A stretch of 34,766 bases of DNA, from contig NC_068984.1 in NCBI RefSeq assembly GCF_001194135.2, positions 91,059,855 to 91,094,620 on the forward strand, given 5' to 3'. Origin of the DNA: Octopus bimaculoides. Lineage: Eukaryota. The translations under genes were made by a program, and so were the position numbers. The number at the start of each line of letters is the position of its first letter. The stretch's first letter is position 1. Of this stretch, positions 1-34,340 are shown one piece after another. The notes beneath the pieces were generated by a model. The model was given only the letters and a program-made list of their open reading frames with translations. It was not told where the DNA came from and made no database searches.

Positions 1-239
1 ATGTGTATGTTGTTGTCACAGATCACGTATGTGTGGTTGTGCATGTTTTTATGTATCTATGTTATGAAAAATAGGTAAAGAATACTGAGAGGAAAGTTTA
101 ATCTATGACTTTGTATGTATCACTTTCTCTTTCTCTCACTCTCCCTCTTTTACTCTTACTCTCTATATTATATGTTGAGCGTGTGGAAGAAATATAAAAG
201 TTGCTAGAAACAACAGCCAAATCTCCCTTAAATCACACA

Positions 240-401
240 AAGTAAACGGAATTTTAAAAATCTAATTACTGCACTGGAAAGTTCACATCGAGAAAATTCC
301 ATTGATGTAAAAATTTTTACAAAAAAATGGAAAATGTGGATTTCTATACACTTTTAAAAAGGCTTCACACAGACACACAACTTCAGCTTTATATATTAAG
401 A
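240..401 (-). mobile_element. Helitron-like 5' terminal fragment
   Basis: Minus strand reads A|TCTTAATATATAAAGCTGAAGTTGTGTGTCTG from 402/401, the A|TC start and ATATATAAAG motif typical of non-autonomous Helitrons. No matching CTAG|T 3' end found; inner boundary approximate. Confidence 0.35.
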
Positions 402-911
402 TATTGCATTCAATTTATGGTGACAACTCTTATATTCCCTCTAAAATTTACCATTTTTGAATTTATACATTTATGCCATAGCATTAAGTGAGGGAGAAAC
501 CAGCCTTAATTGAATGAGGGCAATAGCTCATTATATGTCAACTTTTGTAGAAAACAAAATTATTCTTTCCAATGAAGTATAAATAATTTCAGGCAGATGC
601 TATGACTTAGTGATACATTGAAACAATGCCTGTTATCACATATGAATTCACATGTTAAGATTGATTTGTTTTTTTATTTGGCTGTTCCTCTATATAATTT
701 CCTTTATATCTCACATTTGAAATTATGAAACTAAAATATAGCATATATGGTGATATGTTCAGCATGTATGTCTCCAGTCATTGAATGACTATTCTATCCC
801 CACTAGCTGTTGAACATTAGTTTGCTCTATATCAAAACATCAAACCTATTCTTGTCCCTCCTCATTTCTACATCTTTGCTTACCCAAGTCAATTGTATCA
901 GTTAAAATTAC

Positions 912-993
912 CTGATACTCTTTTGAATTCTGAAACCATCAGGATAAGCCTGAACTTTGGCATCACCATGACCATAATATGTACCATTTTCAG
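912..993 (-). CDS. Candidate coding exon 2 of an unidentified divergent gene (-ENGTYYGHGDAKVQAYPDGFRIQKSI-)
   Basis: Minus strand: acceptor ...tttatattag| then CT GAA AAT GGT ACA TAT TAT GGT CAT GGT GAT GCC AAA GTT CAG GCT TAT CCT GAT GGT TTC AGA ATT CAA AAG AGT ATC AG|gtaatt. 82 nt, open, phase 1 in and phase 2 out, matching the phase-1 exon at 4679-4712. Polypyrimidine tract is weak. Confidence 0.55.
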
Positions 994-3180
994 CTAATAT
1001 AAATTCTTGTCCATGTAACATTTTATTCTATCTTTCAATTTCCATGGTTTTTCACTTACTCCTTCCATTATCTTGAATATTATTCAGTATAATCAGTATA
1101 ATTACCCAACCACTTGTTTATTTGTTGTATTCTCACATTAATTTCAAGCCACTGTTGATTTTTCATATAATTCATAGATAAGCCAAAGCATCATCATTGT
1201 TGTAAGTTAAAGAAAAACAATGAAAACTTTGTTATCTACTGTAAATGTTTCATTTTGAACTTTTCAATCAAGGTTTGTTAAAAGTGAAATATTAAATCAG
1301 CTGATTTTGCCCTGAATCATTATGTGGCTTTTGTCTCATGCTTTCACACCTAGAAATGTTATATCAAGTATTTCTTAATGACGTTCCTTCATTTGAAGTC
1401 CTTTGGGTGTTTTTGGTGGCAAGCCTAACATGCTGCCCAATTTGACATCACTATCTGCTCTTTGAAGGTTGTTGATGAAGTTTACTCTGTTGTAAGCATT
1501 CAGACCAAACTCCAAGTTTATCTCCATAACTATGTTTTGCTTGCAGATGTTGAAATTGGGCATTAATCTCACCAGTCTAGAACTAATCGCATGGGTCATG
1601 GGAACTAAACTCCTCTTTCAATGAACAAACTTTTAATTAGTGGAATGTAATGTACAGGTAGGAAAGGATTCATTCAAAAACTCTGTTGATTACTTGTACA
1701 ATGTAGGATTTATCTATTATTAGCTAGAGGGAAAGGGGCAGTACCCATGACTGCTGCAGGTCCTCCCAGATTGGTGTGATCAAGGGAATTGATGTTTGAG
1801 CATTGGCTAAAATTACAATAGTTGTAAGAAAGAAAGATTGGATAAAGGAATTAACATAATAAAACACCAAAAAGAGGAAGATAATTGGGTGGCCCTACAT
1901 GGAAGGAGTATAAAGCTAGCTAGTTCAGAAAAGCAGATAGAAGAAAATGCATGTCTGCGGACTAGTGGTCGCAGCGTATTCATGAGTGTCTCCATTATTA
2001 TTATATTTGAGACTATTTGAGAAGGTAGCAGTTTTCAAGGATTTTGTGCATTGTTTACTTGAAGGCTGGTCATACAAGAATGTTTCCCAGATATATGTAG
2101 TGATTGGTCTTGATGCTATCAAAAGACACTAAGGTGTTAAGTTCTAATTGGAGCATGTTTTCAAGCTCTCTGTTTATTGACCCAGTATATATGACATATC
2201 TAAACTTTGCGTGTTGAGTGGGGATTAAGGACTGTATGTTAACTAAATAACAGGAGTTTTTTTTGTTCAAATCAGTTGAAGATAATTGTGAGATGTATTG
2301 TAATTAAGTGTCAGAAAGAGGGTTGGATGGGTAAAGCCAGGAATTAGTCATTAAAAGAATTTGAAAGTATACTTTGAGTGAGTATGTAGAATGCTTATTG
2401 GGTGGGGTTATTCCTATTTCTATAACATGTATATTTGGTGGGATTAGTTGAAGGGGTTTGTGAGTGCTAGGGCCCTAATTGTTTTAAGTTTATGTAAGCT
2501 GTTTCTCAGTCAGTGTACCGCATCTTTAGCAGGGGAAGTAACTTGTGAGTTTTTATTTATTTATTTATTTTTTTGTTTCTCTTTGTCAGACTTTTGACAG
2601 AAAAAACCCTGATGCCAGCATCAAAAAGGGGATATATAACACTAATGATAATCATAGAGATGAGTTACTTATTTGAAATTAATTAGAGTTTAAGATAGCT
2701 GACATAAGCATTCTTCATATTTCAGCAGAAAGAAATTTTTTACTTCAGAAAGTTTAACTGTAGTTAAAGAAAGGTTTCAAATGAGAAGAGGTGAGGTGTA
2801 ACAGGTGTTAATGGCATGAATGAATTCAATAGCATAGTCTTCAGTATGATACTGCTGATAATAATGTTTTCTAACATAGGTAATGTCATATATTTTGTGG
2901 GAGAGGTATTGTTGATTATATCAGCATGAGAAGGATGAACTGACCGTGAAACTGACCTTGAGCATTTATATATGCTGGTGTTGTTATTTAGGTAGTGTTT
3001 ACTGTAAGGGAGATTTGGTTGCCATTTCTTACAAGTTGAGTGAGCATGCAGAAACTCCTTTGCTGGTTTGCATTCATAAAAAGCTACAACAGCTAAGGCA
3101 CAGCCTCTAGGGATCAATTGATTTACTTGAAATAATAACAAAATCTCCTTTGGATCACTTTCTTTTATTAATTTTTTTGT

Positions 3181-3886
3181 TGCAGCCATGCTGGAGCACT
3201 GCCTTTAGTTGAACAAATTGACCCCAGGACTTATTCTTTGTAAGCCTAGTACTTATTCTATCAGTACTTATTCTAACCGCTAAGTTATGTGGATGTAAAC
3301 ACACCAACATTGGTTGTCAAGTGATGGTTGGAGAACAAACTCAGACACACAAACATATACAAACGGCATATAAAAAACACTATCCGAACCTGGTTGACAC
3401 CAGGTCTGCCTGACTGGCTACTGTGCCAGTGGCACATAAAAGGCACCAACCGATTGTGACCGATGCCAATACCGCTTGACTGGCTCCTGTGCCAGTGGCA
3501 TGTAAAAAGCACCATCCGAACGTGATCATTGTCAGGCCTGCCTGACTAGCTCCTGTGTCAGTGGCATGTAAAAAGCACCCACTACACTCTTGGAATGGTT
3601 AGTGTTAGGAAGGCATCCAGCTGTAGAAACTTTGCCAGATCAGATTGGAGCCTGGTACAGCTGCTGGCTCTCCAGACCTCTGTCAAACCGTCCAACCTAT
3701 GCCAGCATGAAAAACAGGCGTTAATCGATGATGATGATATATATGCAACAGGCTTCTTTCAGTTTCTGTCTACCAAATCTACTCACAAGGCTTTGGTCAG
3801 CCCAAGGCTATAGTAGAAGACATTTGCCCAAGGTTCCACACATGTGGTTGGTAAGCAAGCTGCTTATCACACATCCACTCCTGTCT
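3181..3886 (-). mobile_element. tRNA-derived SINE (CORE-like), interrupted by a nested insertion
   Basis: Head at 3750-3886 (minus: AGACAGGAGTGGATGTGTGATAAG...GGAACCTTGGGCAAATGTCTTC). Tail at 3181-3367 is closely similar to 34406-34641. The middle is split by the element at 3368-3738. Confidence 0.75.
3368..3738 (+). mobile_element. RTE-LINE 3' end (66-bp minisatellite plus (GAT)n tail)
   Basis: Three 66-bp units starting at 3411, 3477 and 3543, then CACTACACTCT...CCAACCTATGCCAGCATG...GATGATGAT. The same tail is attached to RT-coding copies at 20133-22082 and 33310-34273. Confidence 0.8.
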
Positions 3887-3969
3887 AAAAAAAAATTAAG
3901 GTGCATAAGATAATGTATTCCCAGATTCATTAAAACTAAAAAATAGGAAATCTCAGCTAGAACATCTTT

Positions 3970-4196
3970 GCTCAATCATTATTATGAACTAAATGAGCTA
4001 AGGAGGAGCTTCTATGCAGGTGTTCGACCTGCTAGAAATAGTAACCAAATCTTTGTCATAGTAGACTCTACTATCTTAAAATATAAGGTTACATAAAAAT
4101 AAAAAAAAGTGTAGCCCTGAATACACTGTGCATGAAAAAAGATGGTCACATCTGGAATGCCTTTATCGTAAGTTTGAGGCTAAACAACAGACTGAA
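3970..4196 (+). repeat. Interspersed repeat (GCTAGAAATAG..CCAAATCT family)
   Basis: The core GCTAGAAA(T/C)A..A(G/A)CCAAATCT(CCCT) recurs at about 203-228 (+), 3008-3035 (-) and 4030-4051 (+). Family not assigned; boundaries approximate. Confidence 0.5.
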
Positions 4197-4678
4197 ATAG
4201 AAATTATCTGGCAAGCTAGCGCTACAGGTGGGACTAGTCATAGGCCTGAAAAGTGTAATGTGATAGAGCAATTTTATTAGGGAGACGAATTTACAACATA
4301 TACTCAGGTTGTCTCTATTTCAATTCATTGAGAAACAAAGCTGCTGGGCAAATTTGAATTGCCTCTTCTCTTAAATAGGAACATAAATAAATGAAATAGG
4401 AGCCGCAAACCATTTAGTATTGTATAAATTACTGATATGAAAATTACAAAATTATTATAATGCTTCTGAGAAAATAAGATACGAGTTAAGAAACAATATT
4501 ACTGTAGCTAAACAAAGATAGTATTCAAAAACATGTTCATGGAAGTATTGAGAAGTTGGGAAATATATGATAGGAAATTCTGGTAAATGAGTAAATACCA
4601 TATTCAGGAGATGTTAGCAAAATTAAAAGAAAAAGATATCTCCCAACAAAATTATCTGCTTAACATTTGGTTACTTAC

Positions 4679-4712
4679 GTTTCAAATAAAGCTTTTTGTT
4701 TTTAACAGCCAT
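4679..4712 (-). CDS. Candidate first coding exon of an unidentified divergent gene (MAVKNKKLYLK-)
   Basis: Minus strand ACG ATG GCT GTT AAA AAC AAA AAG CTT TAT TTG AAA C|GTAAGTAA: good Kozak context (A at -3, G at +4), consensus donor GTAAGT, phase 1. Lies in a CpG-enriched zone directly behind two X-boxes. Confidence 0.65.
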
Positions 4713-5147
4713 CGTTATGTTGTCATAGAAACAGTTGCTATGAAAACTTTATTTTCGTAGTTATTAAGTAGAATTTAGGGCTAATCCTTTCAAAATTGTC
4801 TGAAATGAAGTATAAAATGTTATTTTATAATTTACTATGATATACAAAGCTTTAAATATGATTTAGCTATTTATTCTAATTTCACTCTATAACGATTTTA
4901 GAAAACCGGTTATCAGCATCTGTTGTTTCGTATCTCCCTTCTACATAAATTATTTGTCTAAAATATTGAAATAATTTATCTATATAAATTACCAGAATTA
5001 TTTAAAACCAGTTTTTAATATATCATATAATATTTCAATTAATTTGTAGAAAGTGGGTGATTCGAGTGGAGTTGCGGTGTGTGGTTTCAGCTGACCTTGA
5101 CTGGTTGGGTGTCGAAGCCCTGAGGACTCCGAGATTGTTGTTACACT
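4713..5147. promoter_or_regulatory. Putative bidirectional promoter and 5' UTRs
   Basis: 435 bp between divergent ATGs (4712 on -, 5148 on +). CpG is visibly enriched from about 4650 to 6060 compared with the CpG-poor introns. Confidence 0.55.
4719..4747. promoter_or_regulatory. Two tandem RFX X-box motifs
   Basis: GTTGTCATAGAAAC (4719-4732) and GTTGCTATGAAAAC (4734-4747) both fit GTHNYY-AT-RRNAAC exactly and are separated by 1 nt. Confidence 0.75.
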
Positions 5148-26854
<21,707 letters not shown>

Positions 26855-28599: not shown

Positions 28600-29790
28600 A
28601 AAGATTTAAAGAAAATGGAAAGCAAAGAACAGTATCAAGTAGCTGGACGAGAAACTAGATGTCAGATATACTTAGCAAAAGAAGCCATAAGTAAGATATT
28701 TCCCCATGTTCTGCAGTGTGTAGGTCAGAAAGGTGAGATGTTTCAGATAAACAAAGCAATGTACAAGAGAGAATTGAGATGTTGTTGGGGAGAAGTGTGA
28801 TAAAATGAAAGAAGAGCAATTAGAGTCATGGGAAGACTACTGTGAGAAAGTGTTGAATGAGGAGAATGCAAGGAAGGGGAAAAGCTTAACTCAACTAGAT
28901 CCAATAGAAGAGCCAACCATTAAAGTTGACAGCAGCATAGCAAATAGCATGATGAGGGATATGAAACCAAGGAAGGAAGTTAGATCATCAGGTAGGGAAG
29001 CTAAAATGCTAAAAATACTTGGTGAGGTTGGTCATGTACTAGTCACTCACACAGTCAATTATGTAATATAGAAAGTTGTGATACCCAGTGACTTGTATCA
29101 ACTACTACAAAGGAAAAGGAGATACACAAGAGAGAGGCATCAAATTGATGAGCCACGAAATGAAAGTTACTCAGTTATAGCTCATCTGATTATGAAGAAA
29201 AATTGGCATACAGAAGTTACAGTTTAAATTTATATTAGGACAGGTGATGTGTTCTTTGTTAGACAACTGCAGAAGTACTTACCTTGGAATAAAACACTCA
29301 ACATTCATTGACTTTGAGAAGGTTTCAGACTCTGTAATTTGATCACTTAAGAGATTAGGGATAGATAAATGGCTTGTGAAGGCCATGTACAGAAGTGTAG
29401 TGAGTAATACATTCTGCAACAAATTTGGTGTTCAGATAAGGGAGCAATCATGGCCAAGTTCAAGCCCCTTCTTGTTTATAACAGATGTTCAAGACCAACA
29501 GTGCAAGGGACATTTTGTATGCTGCTGACCTAGGTCTAGTAGTTGAATCTGTAGAGTCAGAGAAGAAAATTCCAAATATGGAAGCAGTATCTAGAATCAA
29601 GAGGGTAAAGACAGAACCCTGCTGCCACCTAGGAAATGGCCAAGTTTGTATACAGATAAAGAGTATATTGAAATTTTATGCTATACCTGGCTTAAACTAT
29701 GAAAGCACAAGATATAGTGGGATCATACATAGTTGTAGAAAAGATTCACCTACTCATGTAAACCTGGCAAAATGGATGTTAGAATAATAG
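28600..29790 (+). mobile_element. Old degenerate RTE-clade LINE
   Basis: Broken reading frames with WEDYCEKVLNEENA, EAKMLKILGEVG..LVT, YKGKGD, RGIKLM, VRQLQ, IDFEK, LGIDKWLV, ILYAADL, LESRG remnants. Confidence 0.8.
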
Positions 29791-30426: not shown

Positions 30427-30809
30427 AAGAGTGTGTTTGAAAGATAGATAGCTAAGTATTGTTGTCATCCTGGTAACTAACAAGTTTTGATTAGAAACAT
30501 GGGAATTTTAAGTGCAAGTGAATAGAGTGGAACACAAACTTTGAAAGACATTTATGTATGTATATATACTTATATATATAATACATAAAGTTATTATTAT
30601 TTTTGTTTCTGTGTGTGTGTGTTTCTATGTCTTTTAACATATGGACAAGGCAAAACAGACTTCAAAAGATAACTATATATATATACACACATACATATAT
30701 GTACACACATATATATACACATACAAATATGTACACACACATATATATACATACATACATACATACATATATATATACACATATATATATATATACACAC
30801 GCATATATA

Positions 30810-30842
<33 letters not shown>

Positions 30843-31038
30843 CACATACACACACACACATATATGATTGATCGCTAGCCACTAAATCTTTTTTATTTTC
30901 TCTCTCTGCTTATCTCTATGTTTCTCTCCTGTTGAAGAGCGTAGGCTCAAAATGTAAAAGACTTTCTCACTTCCCGAGCTAATACATCTGTTTGTTGTTT
31001 ACACACCTGTCTTTGTCTTTTGTTTTTTTGTAAATTCC

Positions 31039-31093
<55 letters not shown>

Positions 31094-31150
31094 TATATAC
31101 ACACACACATATATATGCACACACACATGTATATACACACACACACGTAT
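30050..31150. repeat. Microsatellite-rich block: (GA)n, (GT)n, (TA)n, (CA)n
   Basis: Runs are directly visible. A degenerate unit GGAGGAGAAAA..GTTG ... GTAACTAACAAGTTTTGA is duplicated (tails near 30253 and 30472). Confidence 0.9.
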
Positions 31151-31154
31151 ATGG

Positions 31155-31709
31155 CTTTAAGATTACATAAAACACATGGCCTTCCTTTCAAACCTTTCTT
31201 GCTGTGCTATTTGACACCATCCTCTCATGATGCAAAATGTCTAGCCGTTATGCTAAGAAATTTTCTCTCTTTTTAATCGTTCATCATTCTCTTTATGTAA
31301 CTTTATTACTAACATCTTAAATGAGTCTGAGTTAAATTAACTTTGTAAGGTTAATGCGAAGCTAGCCTGTATTTCCATTTCTTTTTCTCAATGTCTCAGC
31401 TAAGAAACTTCTCTAGATTTTTAACCATTCATCATTGTTTACATTCAGCTTACTTGTATTATTTACATGCTAATCGTTTGATTTTCTTGTGGCAAAGCTA
31501 GCCATTTTCTTTTTTTCCATTTCATGATTGTCCTCTATTGTCCTTTGCTGCTATTTCCATTCATTTGTGGTGAAGCCAGCCACTCTTTGACCACTCCTGA
31601 CTTTAAGACTATATAAAACACATGGCCTTCTTCCCAAACCTTCTTTCTTCTGCTATTTGACACCATCATATCACGACACGAAATGTCCAGCTAAACTAAG
31701 AAATTCTCT
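31155..31709 (+). repeat. Direct repeat of about 110 bp, period 446 bp
   Basis: CTTTAAGA.TA.ATAAAACACATGGCCTTC...CTATTTGACACCATC...AAATGTC.AGC...CTAAGAAATT at 31155-31268 and 31601-31709. Confidence 0.8.
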
Positions 31710-31891
31710 TGCCCACCTTTTCCTGCCCCCACCACCAATACAGGAAATCCCTTCTTGCATACTGGTAATCCCTTCTCTCACATACCAGTAATTCCTTCTC
31801 TTGCATACCAGTAATCTCTTCTTTTTACTGTCAAATCTCTTCCCTCATACTGAAAACTCCCACAGCACTCTGCCTCACTTCTGCATCAGAC

Positions 31892-32102
31892 NNNNNNNNN
31901 NNNNNNNNNNNNNNNNNNNNNNNNNNNNNNNNNNNNNNNNNNNNNNNNNNNNNNNNNNNNNNNNNNNNNNNNNNNNNNNNNNNNNNNNNNNNNNNNNNNN
32001 NNNNNNNNNNNNNNNNNNNNNNNNNNNNNNNNNNNNNNNNNNNNNNNNNNNNNNNNNNNNNNNNNNNNNNNNNNNNNNNNNNNNNNNNNNNNNNNNNNNN
32101 NN
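31892..32102. other. Assembly gap (211 N)
   Basis: Run of N, followed by (AT)n. Confidence 1.
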
Positions 32103-32135
<33 letters not shown>

Positions 32136-32138
<3 letters not shown>

Positions 32139-34340
32139 GATGTGTAAGGTATTTGAGGACACACCTTTTTTGGGTCATTGCTGCATTTGCTAACTCTGTA
32201 TAATCTTTGTTTCAGAAAATAATAATGGCAGACCCTCAGCTTACTCAAGAAATGAAGAGGTGTACTGTTATTGTGGTTATAAAGGCTGAGCATAGCAATT
32301 GAGAAATATCTTGATTTTTAAAAGTTGCCAGATCTTTCACCTACAAAGTTTGTAAGGAGCTAGAAACTGAAGATGGAAACGTATCACAAGCATAAAAAGT
32401 ATTCTAAATGCTCTGAAATGATCAGAATAGCTGAATTTATCCAACAAAGTTCAACAGACCATTGATTACAATCCCAGAGAGTCCATGAGGTCAGTTGCAA
32501 AAGATCTCCATGTGTCAGAAGGAACAGTCAGAAATGTTGTCCACAAAGACATCAATCTTATATGATAAGGAAAGGTCAATTTGTCAGAAAAAGCCAAAAA
32601 AAAAAAATCACTACTTCACATCTAAAAGGCTCTTAAACAAACTGAAAAATCCAGAGAAGATTTGATTTTGTTTTTCTCAAATGAGAAAAACTTCAACCAA
32701 GATCAAAAAGTTAACAGAAGAAATGACAAATGGTTATGTGCAGACCCTTCTGAAGTTCCAAGTGATATGCATACAAAATTTCCTGTAATTATGATGGTTT
32801 TAGCGGTTGTCAACAATGAAGGACATGTGATGCCTCCTTACTTCTTTCCAGAAGGCTTTAGAGTTACCTCTGCTGCCTACATTGTGGTCCTGAAAATAAT
32901 TCTTAAGCCCTGGATAGACAGTGAATGCAACAGAAGGCCATATGTGTTTCAGTAAGACTCTGCACTATTACACATGGCTCTTGTAACACAGGAATGGATG
33001 GCTGAAACGTTTCATGATCACATAAGCCCTAACATTTGGCTTCCTGATTCCCCAGATCTCAATCTATTGGATGTGGAGCATTGTTGAGAGAGAGAGGTCA
33101 ATGAACATGTCCATAACATCAAAGATTCTTTGAAAGCTGCCACAGTCAGAGTAATGTCCAAAATGAACAAGGACCACTTGATTCGAGCATGTAGATGATT
33201 TAGATCTCATATACAAGCAGTTGTTGAAGCTGAAGGTGGCTTTATTGAATAACATTATAGAAAAGAAGGTTTATTTTTATACTCATAGCATTTTTTGATA
33301 AATAGAGTTAAACATGGGCCGTGACTGGTGATGACATGCGTAGGCTCGAAAGAGATGAAGCTAGCATGATCCGCTGGATATGTAATATCAGTGTGCACAC
33401 GACAAAGTGTAAGCACCCTGAGAAAAATGTCGGACATAAGAAGCATTGGATGTGGCGTGCAAGAGAGAAGTCTGCACTGGTAAGGTCATATACTAAGGAT
33501 GGATGAGGAGAGCTGTGTGAAGAAGTGCCACTCCCAAACAGTGGAAGAAACCTGCGATAAAGGGAGACCCAGGAAGGCATGGGATGAGGTGGTGAAGCAT
33601 GACCTTTGAACGCTGGGATTCACAGAAGCAATGATGAAAGACTGAGACCTCTGGAGATATGCTGTGACCGAGAAGACCCAGCAAATAAAGTGAGATCACA
33701 GCTGCAGTCTATGCCAGTATCACATAACCAGCCCACTCAAAAGTAGCTTTTGGATTGTAGGGCAACATGCCGTGCTTGAGGAGACCAATTGAGTCAAGTA
33801 CATCAACATCAAAATCAAATCAAACCACAATCAAATGGAAATTGTAGTTGTAACTGATGCCAGCACTGCCTGTCTGGCTCCCTTTGCCGGTGGCATGTAA
33901 AAATCACCATCCAAACGTGGTTGATGCCATCCACCTTGCCCTGACTGGCTCCTGTGCCGGTGGCATATGAAAAGCACCACCCAAAGGTGGCCAATGCCAG
34001 TGCCGCCTTGACTGGCTCCCATGCTGGTGGCATGTAAAAGCACCATCCAAATGTGGTTGATGCCAGCCCCCTCTGGCCCCTGTGCCAGTGGCTTGTAAAA
34101 AGCACCCACTACACTCTCGGAGTGGTTGGCATTTGGAAGGGCATCCACTTGTAGAAAACACTACCAGATCAGATTGGAGCCTGGTGCAGCCTCCTGACTT
34201 CCCAGACTCCCCAGTCGAACTGTCCAACCCATGCCAGCATGGAAAATGGACGTTTAGCAACGATGATGATGATCATTATCTGTTATTATATATGTTTTTT
34301 TATAAACATAAATCTGTCCTCAAATATCTTATGCACCCTG
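32136..34340 (+). mobile_element. Tc1/mariner superfamily, maT (DD37D) transposon, degenerate
   Basis: 26-bp TIRs (32136-32161 and 34315-34340, 22/26 identical) flanked by TA. Transposase remnant 32225-33252 has FSNEK (D to N), DSALLH and WLPDSPDLNLLD, with 37 residues between the second and third Asp. Several stops and frameshifts. Confidence 0.9.
33310..34273 (+). mobile_element. 5'-truncated RTE-LINE nested in the maT element
   Basis: Starts at TWAVTGDDMRRLERDEASMIRWICNISV, homologous to the intron-10 copy; then 3' UTR, four minisatellite units and a (GAT)n tail. Sits between the transposase stop and the right TIR. Confidence 0.9.

Follow-up and report, generated by a model that had tools for sequence, protein, structure and literature searches.

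Does a protein-coding gene start immediately upstream of DLAT in Octopus bimaculoides, on the opposite strand, and, if so, what does it encode? The question is raised by a 34,766-nucleotide stretch of contig NC_068984.1 (NCBI RefSeq assembly GCF_001194135.2, positions 91,059,855 to 91,094,620 of the forward strand), referred to below as the window, in which an initial annotation, made from the sequence alone, reported a "hidden" gene transcribed divergently from DLAT and missing from the list of open reading frames (ORFs). Its first two exons were placed on the minus strand at positions 4712-4679 and 993-912, the gene was expected to continue past the left edge of the window, and the protein was not recognized. 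The gene and its first coding exon are probably real, as suggested by the start codon, the splice donor and a called gene in the sister species O. sinensis, whose orthologous product is a 117-aa MORN-repeat protein. It is an ordinary gene of an already-annotated kind, with an orthologous model in the public assembly of O. sinensis, and nothing about its biology is hidden; its absence from the ORF list is explained by the two proposed exons being only 11 and 27 codons long.

The minus-strand ATG (positions 4712-4710) is found in the context ACATAACGATGG, with an A at -3 and a G at +4. It opens a first coding exon, 4712-4679 as read from the sequence, that consists of 11 codons (MAVKNKKLYLK) and a single C (4679), the first base of codon 12. 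This base is followed on the same strand by a phase-1 splice donor, GTAAGT (4678-4673); scored by a simple, generic weight matrix, it ranks in the 96th percentile among all the GT dinucleotides of the strand. An ATG with a GTRAGT donor following in frame is seen only twice in 5.1 kb of the minus strand (window 1-5100), which makes exon 1 a moderately rare signal. The ATG in good context, the 11-codon exon and the phase-1 donor are all located where the initial annotation had placed them.

Evidence that this ATG is used comes from the orthologous locus of O. sinensis, contig VCDQ01000716.1 of the assembly GCA_006345805.1, which was retrieved with a 10-kb flank and whose own coordinates are given here as L001. 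The O. sinensis DLAT protein (XP_029656877.1) was recovered by a protein search with the concatenated DLAT exons of the window, and the window and the contig are 87-92% identical when indels are included and ∼93-95% identical for point differences; apart from the first 386 bases, the whole window is covered by the alignment. In O. sinensis, DLAT is called from L001 10001, which aligns to window 5148; because L001 10001 is the DLAT ATG, the called ranges in L001 are coding ranges. The same locus carries a called minus-strand gene that extends from L001 1, where it runs off the locus, to L001 9565, divergently from DLAT. Position L001 9565, the coding start of this gene (record position ∼19917), aligns exactly to window 4712, so that the ATG in the window is the orthologous counterpart of the coding start of the sister-species gene model. 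The two start codons, 4712 on the minus strand and 5148 on the plus strand, are 436 bp apart, and the spacing is equal in O. sinensis. Divergent and separated at their starts by less than 1 kb, the two genes are arranged as a standard head-to-head pair; the plus-strand orientation of DLAT was confirmed, and the called O. sinensis gene has the same arrangement, in agreement with the divergent orientation originally proposed.

The O. sinensis MORN gene is accordingly the closest known system. In addition to the orthologous start codon and the spacing, the two loci share the frame of exon 1, its donor and the proximal of two X-box motifs described below; they differ by ∼5-7% in point divergence and in 2 of the 11 residues of exon 1. 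The O. sinensis version of this exon reads MAVKSKKLSLK, with three synonymous and two nonsynonymous changes that leave the ATG and the frame intact, and its donor is GTAGGT. The phase-1 site is the sole donor option for exon 1 that scores positive in both species.

Several observations weigh against a real gene start at 4712. Exon 1 is only 34 nt long, and in the alignment with O. sinensis its coding sequence is 85% conserved, less than the flanks (∼95%). The peptide that results from joining it to 993-912 has no protein homologue in the searches made, and the two species, with ∼6% divergence, are too close for conservation to discriminate. The first exon of the O. sinensis model could itself be an ab initio extension without RNA backing. 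These points would fit an explanation in which both proposed exons are chance ORF fragments and the O. sinensis first exon is an artefact of a gene predictor that responded to the same ATG-plus-donor signal. This explanation appears improbable, however, as it requires a predictor to have stretched the MORN gene over more than 9.5 kb to reach the start codon, which is unlikely without spliced RNA support. Furthermore, the context of the ATG is good, the donor matches the consensus, and the only two sites in the window that conform to the X-box consensus are located directly upstream of this ATG, one of them conserved. The ATG at 4712 is thus very probably a genuine start codon, that of a protein-coding gene divergent from DLAT whose first coding exon, 4712-4679, would end at the GTAAGT donor.

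The orthologous O. sinensis protein, 117 aa in length and with precomputed Pfam matches on record, matches the Pfam MORN family (PF02493), whose tandem repeat unit has 23 residues, at an E value of ≤1e-5; it is this product, i.e., the whole gene rather than the part encoded in the window, that belongs to the MORN-repeat family. Regular-expression scans and inspection of open segments revealed no canonical MORN repeats on the minus strand of window 1-4720 or of L001 1-9600, and no YxGxW, GxG or DGxxYxG patterns are encoded on the minus strand of window 1-4720. The absence of canonical repeats from these two ranges places them further left; on the strength of these scans, they must be encoded more than 5.9 kb beyond the proposed second exon, outside the window. 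Likewise, the peptide encoded within the window, with exons 1 and 2 joined as originally proposed, was not found to contain MORN repeats.

The second exon is where the original gene structure becomes doubtful. It was proposed that exon 1 (4712-4679) is spliced to an 82-nt segment at 993-912 on the minus strand, open and entered in phase 1, and that the protein begins with MAVKNKKLYLKPENGTYYGHGDAKVQAYPDGFRIQKSI(R/S). The segment is present as described: it is preceded by the acceptor TTAG/CT, with 993 as the first exon base, and followed after 912 by the donor CAG/GTAATT, and translation of the joined exons again yields MAVKNKKLYLKPENGTYYGHGDAKVQAYPDGFRIQKSI, with AG left over (phase 2). The phases are compatible, the frame is open, and the donor is good, reaching the 98th percentile of all GT dinucleotides on the strand by the weight matrix. 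The codon usage of the segment, scored with a table built from DLAT, amounts to 0.32 bit per codon, a value exceeded by few of the 1376 null candidates (top 3.6%) and comparable to those of true DLAT exons, which range from 0.02 to 0.79. In O. sinensis (record positions 16275-16356) the frame is kept, with only two substitutions, one synonymous and one T-to-A, and positions 901-1100 are among the best-conserved stretches of the putative intron (97-98%). If this exon were used, residues 12-38 would form a degenerate MORN-like hairpin at the N terminus, followed by ∼78 residues of canonical repeats. The lengths would then fit (39 + 78 = 117, compared with 82 residues past the matching point in mouse MORN2), and by eye the motifs PENGTYYG and YPDG resemble PNGDTYDG and TPNG, which occupy matching positions in the N-terminal extension of mouse MORN2.

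Against this stands, first of all, a very weak acceptor. It scores -9.5, with 45% pyrimidines at positions -22 to -3, whereas the 11 DLAT acceptors in the window score from -2.3 to +8.3 and have 60-90% pyrimidines; the proposed acceptor is equaled or surpassed by 71% of the AG dinucleotides in the window. In addition, downstream of exon 1 the window contains 50 AG..GTRA segments that are open, compatible with phase 1 and no shorter than 50 nt, a number that rises to 331 when every GT is accepted as a donor. With 50 phase-compatible candidates arising by chance, a good-looking one is expected, and 993-912 is not unusual; similarly, its codon score is unremarkable, because among 50 candidates one or two in the top 3.6% are expected by chance. 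Conservation cannot decide the matter either, because the two species differ by only ∼6%: the segment is 97.6% identical to its O. sinensis counterpart, but several purely intronic 100-nt bins are equally high. The conservation of both exons in a related cephalopod, which had been named as a check, was found as far as the reading frames are concerned, but in species too close for it to discriminate exon 2.

Protein searches point in the same direction. A search with the joined 39-aa peptide, called for in the initial annotation, found no match in Pfam or among PDB sequences even at E values up to 10, and the X-padded peptide had no match with three shared 5-residue words in a word-indexed collection of 5.8 billion proteins. 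O. sinensis DLAT, from the same contig VCDQ01000716.1, is present in that collection, and an O. sinensis product with the orthologous exon 2 would have 18 five-residue words in common with the query, as counted from the alignment of the two species; for these reasons, the null word search argues against the presence of ENGAYYGHGDAKVQAYPDGFRIQKSI, expected from exon 2, in the O. sinensis product. BLASTP of the 39-mer against mouse MORN2 produced no alignment, and a MORN profile built from repeats in the PDB gave the exon 2 peptide 0.6 bit, rank 33 of 1377 peptides, which is within chance. An exhaustive HMMER search of 1.84 billion representative proteins was run with the contiguous ORF window 911-1021 (minus strand), rather than the spliced peptide, as the query. 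Its sole match, a 1683-aa repetitive bacterial protein with a YHGDA..Y.DG motif, was rejected as a repeat-driven chance match. A better second exon was sought in both species, but only repeat-derived, GC-rich candidates emerged.

The use of 993-912 as the second exon is not established and is, on balance, the less probable reading; the structure in which 4712-4679 is spliced to it is a doubtful one, and the segment is probably not part of the mRNA. More likely, exon 1 would be spliced to an exon located left of position 1, outside the window; of the 39-aa peptide, no more than the first 11 residues would then be reliable. The proposal that the window holds exons 1 and 2 of a real gene continuing past its left edge is thus retained for the start and for the leftward run (the O. 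sinensis gene passes the end of the 10-kb flank), but not for exon 2 and, hence, not for residues 12-38.

The segment 993-912 could also be accounted for without ATG 4712, as part of an alternative first exon with its own ATG at 1021 (MLHGQEFILAENGTYY...). The 37-codon ORF at 1021-908 on the minus strand starts with this ATG and is open in both species, and the 100 nt upstream of it are well conserved. Nevertheless, there is no promoter-like feature or X-box nearby, the ORF has no match among database proteins, and ORFs of such length are common (9 kb contain 84 that encode at least 30 aa), all of which makes an independent start at 1021 extremely improbable. An ORF of 141 aa within the putative intron 1 (2764-3189, minus strand) starts with ATG and exceeds all others of the region in length; it has no Pfam match, its frame is interrupted by stop codons in O. 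sinensis, and it is probably a chance ORF.

The sequence directly upstream of the ATG at 4712 provides an independent indication. X-boxes are binding sites for RFX factors, and RFX factors drive ciliary genes. Two adjacent palindromic 14-mers of this type span positions 7-35 bp upstream of the ATG: the proximal one, GTTGTCATAGAAAC, at 4719-4732, is 7 bp from the ATG, and the distal one, GTTGCTATGAAAAC, at 4734-4747, is 22 bp from it. Each matches on both strands the X-box consensus GTHNYYATRRNAAC, which is the nematode form GTHNYY AT RRNAAC (bioRxiv 10.1101/2020.08.21.260547; PMC2375033). In the 34.8-kb window this consensus has four strand-matches, compared to 0.32 expected from shuffles, and all four fall at 4719-4732 and 4734-4747, i.e., close upstream of the start codon, as in RFX targets. 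Both sites also fit the restricted Drosophila consensus GYTRYY N1-3 RRHRAC (PMC2375033). The proximal X-box is identical in O. sinensis (L001 9572-9585), and the distal one has a single mismatch to the consensus there. The motifs thus resemble those of the RFX/DAF-19 ciliary genes of Caenorhabditis elegans and Drosophila in being palindromic 14-mers that match the published consensuses (PMC2375033, PMC3245922), close to the ATG, present in two copies and partly conserved between species.

Some features of these motifs call for caution. The conservation in O. sinensis carries little weight, as the flanks are ∼95% identical anyway. The looser consensus GYTRYY N1-3 RRHRAC is frequent, with 10 matches in the window versus 3.7 expected, and the strictest one, RTNRCC N1-3 RGYAAC, is not matched by either X-box. 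In contrast to the RFX/DAF-19 targets, the octopus motifs are located only 7-35 bp from the ATG and may lie in the 5' untranslated region (UTR); they are putative RFX sites. Moreover, an X-box does not by itself predict RFX dependence, although cross-species conservation helps (PMC2375033). Even so, an RFX-driven ciliary or flagellar gene is plausible, and an RFX factor would then drive it in ciliated or flagellated cells.

A very short ORF, ATG ACA ACA TAA (MTT), is found at 4726-4715 on the minus strand, inside the proximal X-box, and its end is 3 nt upstream of the main ATG. It would be relevant only for transcripts that begin further upstream. A further palindromic X-box-like site, GTTGCTAGAAACAAC, is found at 200-214, in the part of the window that has no alignment to the O. 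sinensis locus (positions 1-386; the alignment begins at window 387). An inverted repeat of 42 nt has its arms at 198-239 and 2996-3037, and the site is located in the first of these.

What kind of MORN protein might be made under such a promoter? The small axonemal MORN proteins in the PDB include MORN2 (central apparatus), MORN3 and MORN5 (chains in 9FQR, 8J07 and 9D2F) and RSPH1 (radial spoke head). The long form of mouse MORN2 (152 aa; PDB 9IJJ, chain 3Q) resembles the octopus product in being a small protein composed almost wholly of MORN repeats, and the MORN2 size range of 79-152 aa is comparable to the octopus 117 aa. In vertebrates, MORN2 is not known to be adjacent to DLAT; MORN3 and MORN5 are located in radial spokes. 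In mouse sperm, MORN2 belongs to the C1a and C1e projections of the central apparatus (PMC12297659), and both sperm motility and the formation of the mitochondrial sheath require it (PMC10916217); such a role in cilia or flagella would fit the X-box promoter of the octopus gene. In contrast to these similarities, the octopus 39-aa N-terminal peptide shows no BLASTP similarity to MORN2, which weighs against the assignment. A small axonemal MORN protein of the MORN2 type would fit the X-boxes, and such a product is plausible, with MORN2 orthology a lead drawn from size and context only.

The 435-bp interval between the divergent start codons (4713-5147) presumably contains a shared bidirectional promoter and both 5' UTRs; positions 4901-5300 are 97-99% identical to O. 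sinensis. One could imagine that, through this 0.44-kb bidirectional promoter and its tandem X-boxes, an RFX factor co-induces DLAT and the MORN2-like gene, whose product would be an axonemal or mitochondrial-sheath protein, in sperm or ciliated cells. Such co-induction would firmly couple the energy supply from mitochondria to the assembly of flagella, reminiscent of the impaired mitochondrial respiration in sperm of Morn2-knockout mice (PMC10916217), but we regard it as highly speculative and very unlikely to be correct.

The main value of these observations is for annotation, in that the 5' end of a small MORN-repeat gene can be placed upstream of DLAT. An ATG with a consensus donor near the promoter of a neighboring gene is a valid lead to such a gene. 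Joining it to the best-looking open AG/GT segment, on the other hand, cannot be relied on when the genome is AT-rich, introns are long and ∼50 such segments occur by chance. The tandem X-boxes offer a cheap, testable hint of a ciliary or flagellar gene.

The neighboring gene, DLAT, encodes mitochondrial pyruvate dehydrogenase E2. Its coding region, delineated by spliced alignment to XP_029656877.1, extends on the plus strand from the ATG at 5148 to the stop codon at 26854 and comprises 12 coding exons that yield a clean product of 512 aa; this reconstructed sequence is absent from the protein collection, and a look-up of the exon 1 ORF likewise gave no record. Exon 1 (5148-5266, plus strand), the head-to-head neighbor of the MORN gene start, encodes the mitochondrial presequence; the lipoyl domain is encoded by the plus-strand exon at 11147-11370. 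The linker has 12 consecutive prolines, encoded by exon 4 (11817-12089, plus strand). With only one lipoyl domain, octopus DLAT is 512 aa long, compared with ∼640 aa for the two-lipoyl vertebrate proteins that make up the majority of the listed matches. The last DLAT intron (22846-26724) contains frameshifted remnants of a piggyBac-type transposase (24988-26290, plus strand), consisting of three ORFs in different frames, with matches to the Pfam domain DDE_Tnp_1_7 (E values of 3e-12 and 2e-18) and to the associated zinc finger zf-Tnp_2, the latter just under the curated cutoff (23.2 versus 24 bits; E value of 1e-4).

The putative intron 1 of the MORN gene contains, at 3365-3562, three tandem copies of a 66-nt unit that are 71-77% identical. 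The unit belongs to a dispersed, GC-richer repeat family, with related copies near 20131-20773 and 33885-34293 and matches at several sites of the O. sinensis locus, on both strands; it is this family that yields the best-scoring false exon candidates. Rfam searches gave no match in the window, the 66-nt repeat included. Downstream of DLAT, open segments at 28778-29784 and 32431-33084 (both on the plus strand) look by eye like transposase or reverse transcriptase fragments, and three of these downstream segments had no Pfam match at E values of ≤0.01. A run of N at ∼31890-32110 marks an assembly gap, from which it follows that the window comes from a scaffolded draft assembly; the gap is flanked by long TA/CA-rich microsatellites at ∼30600-31170 and 32110-32150.

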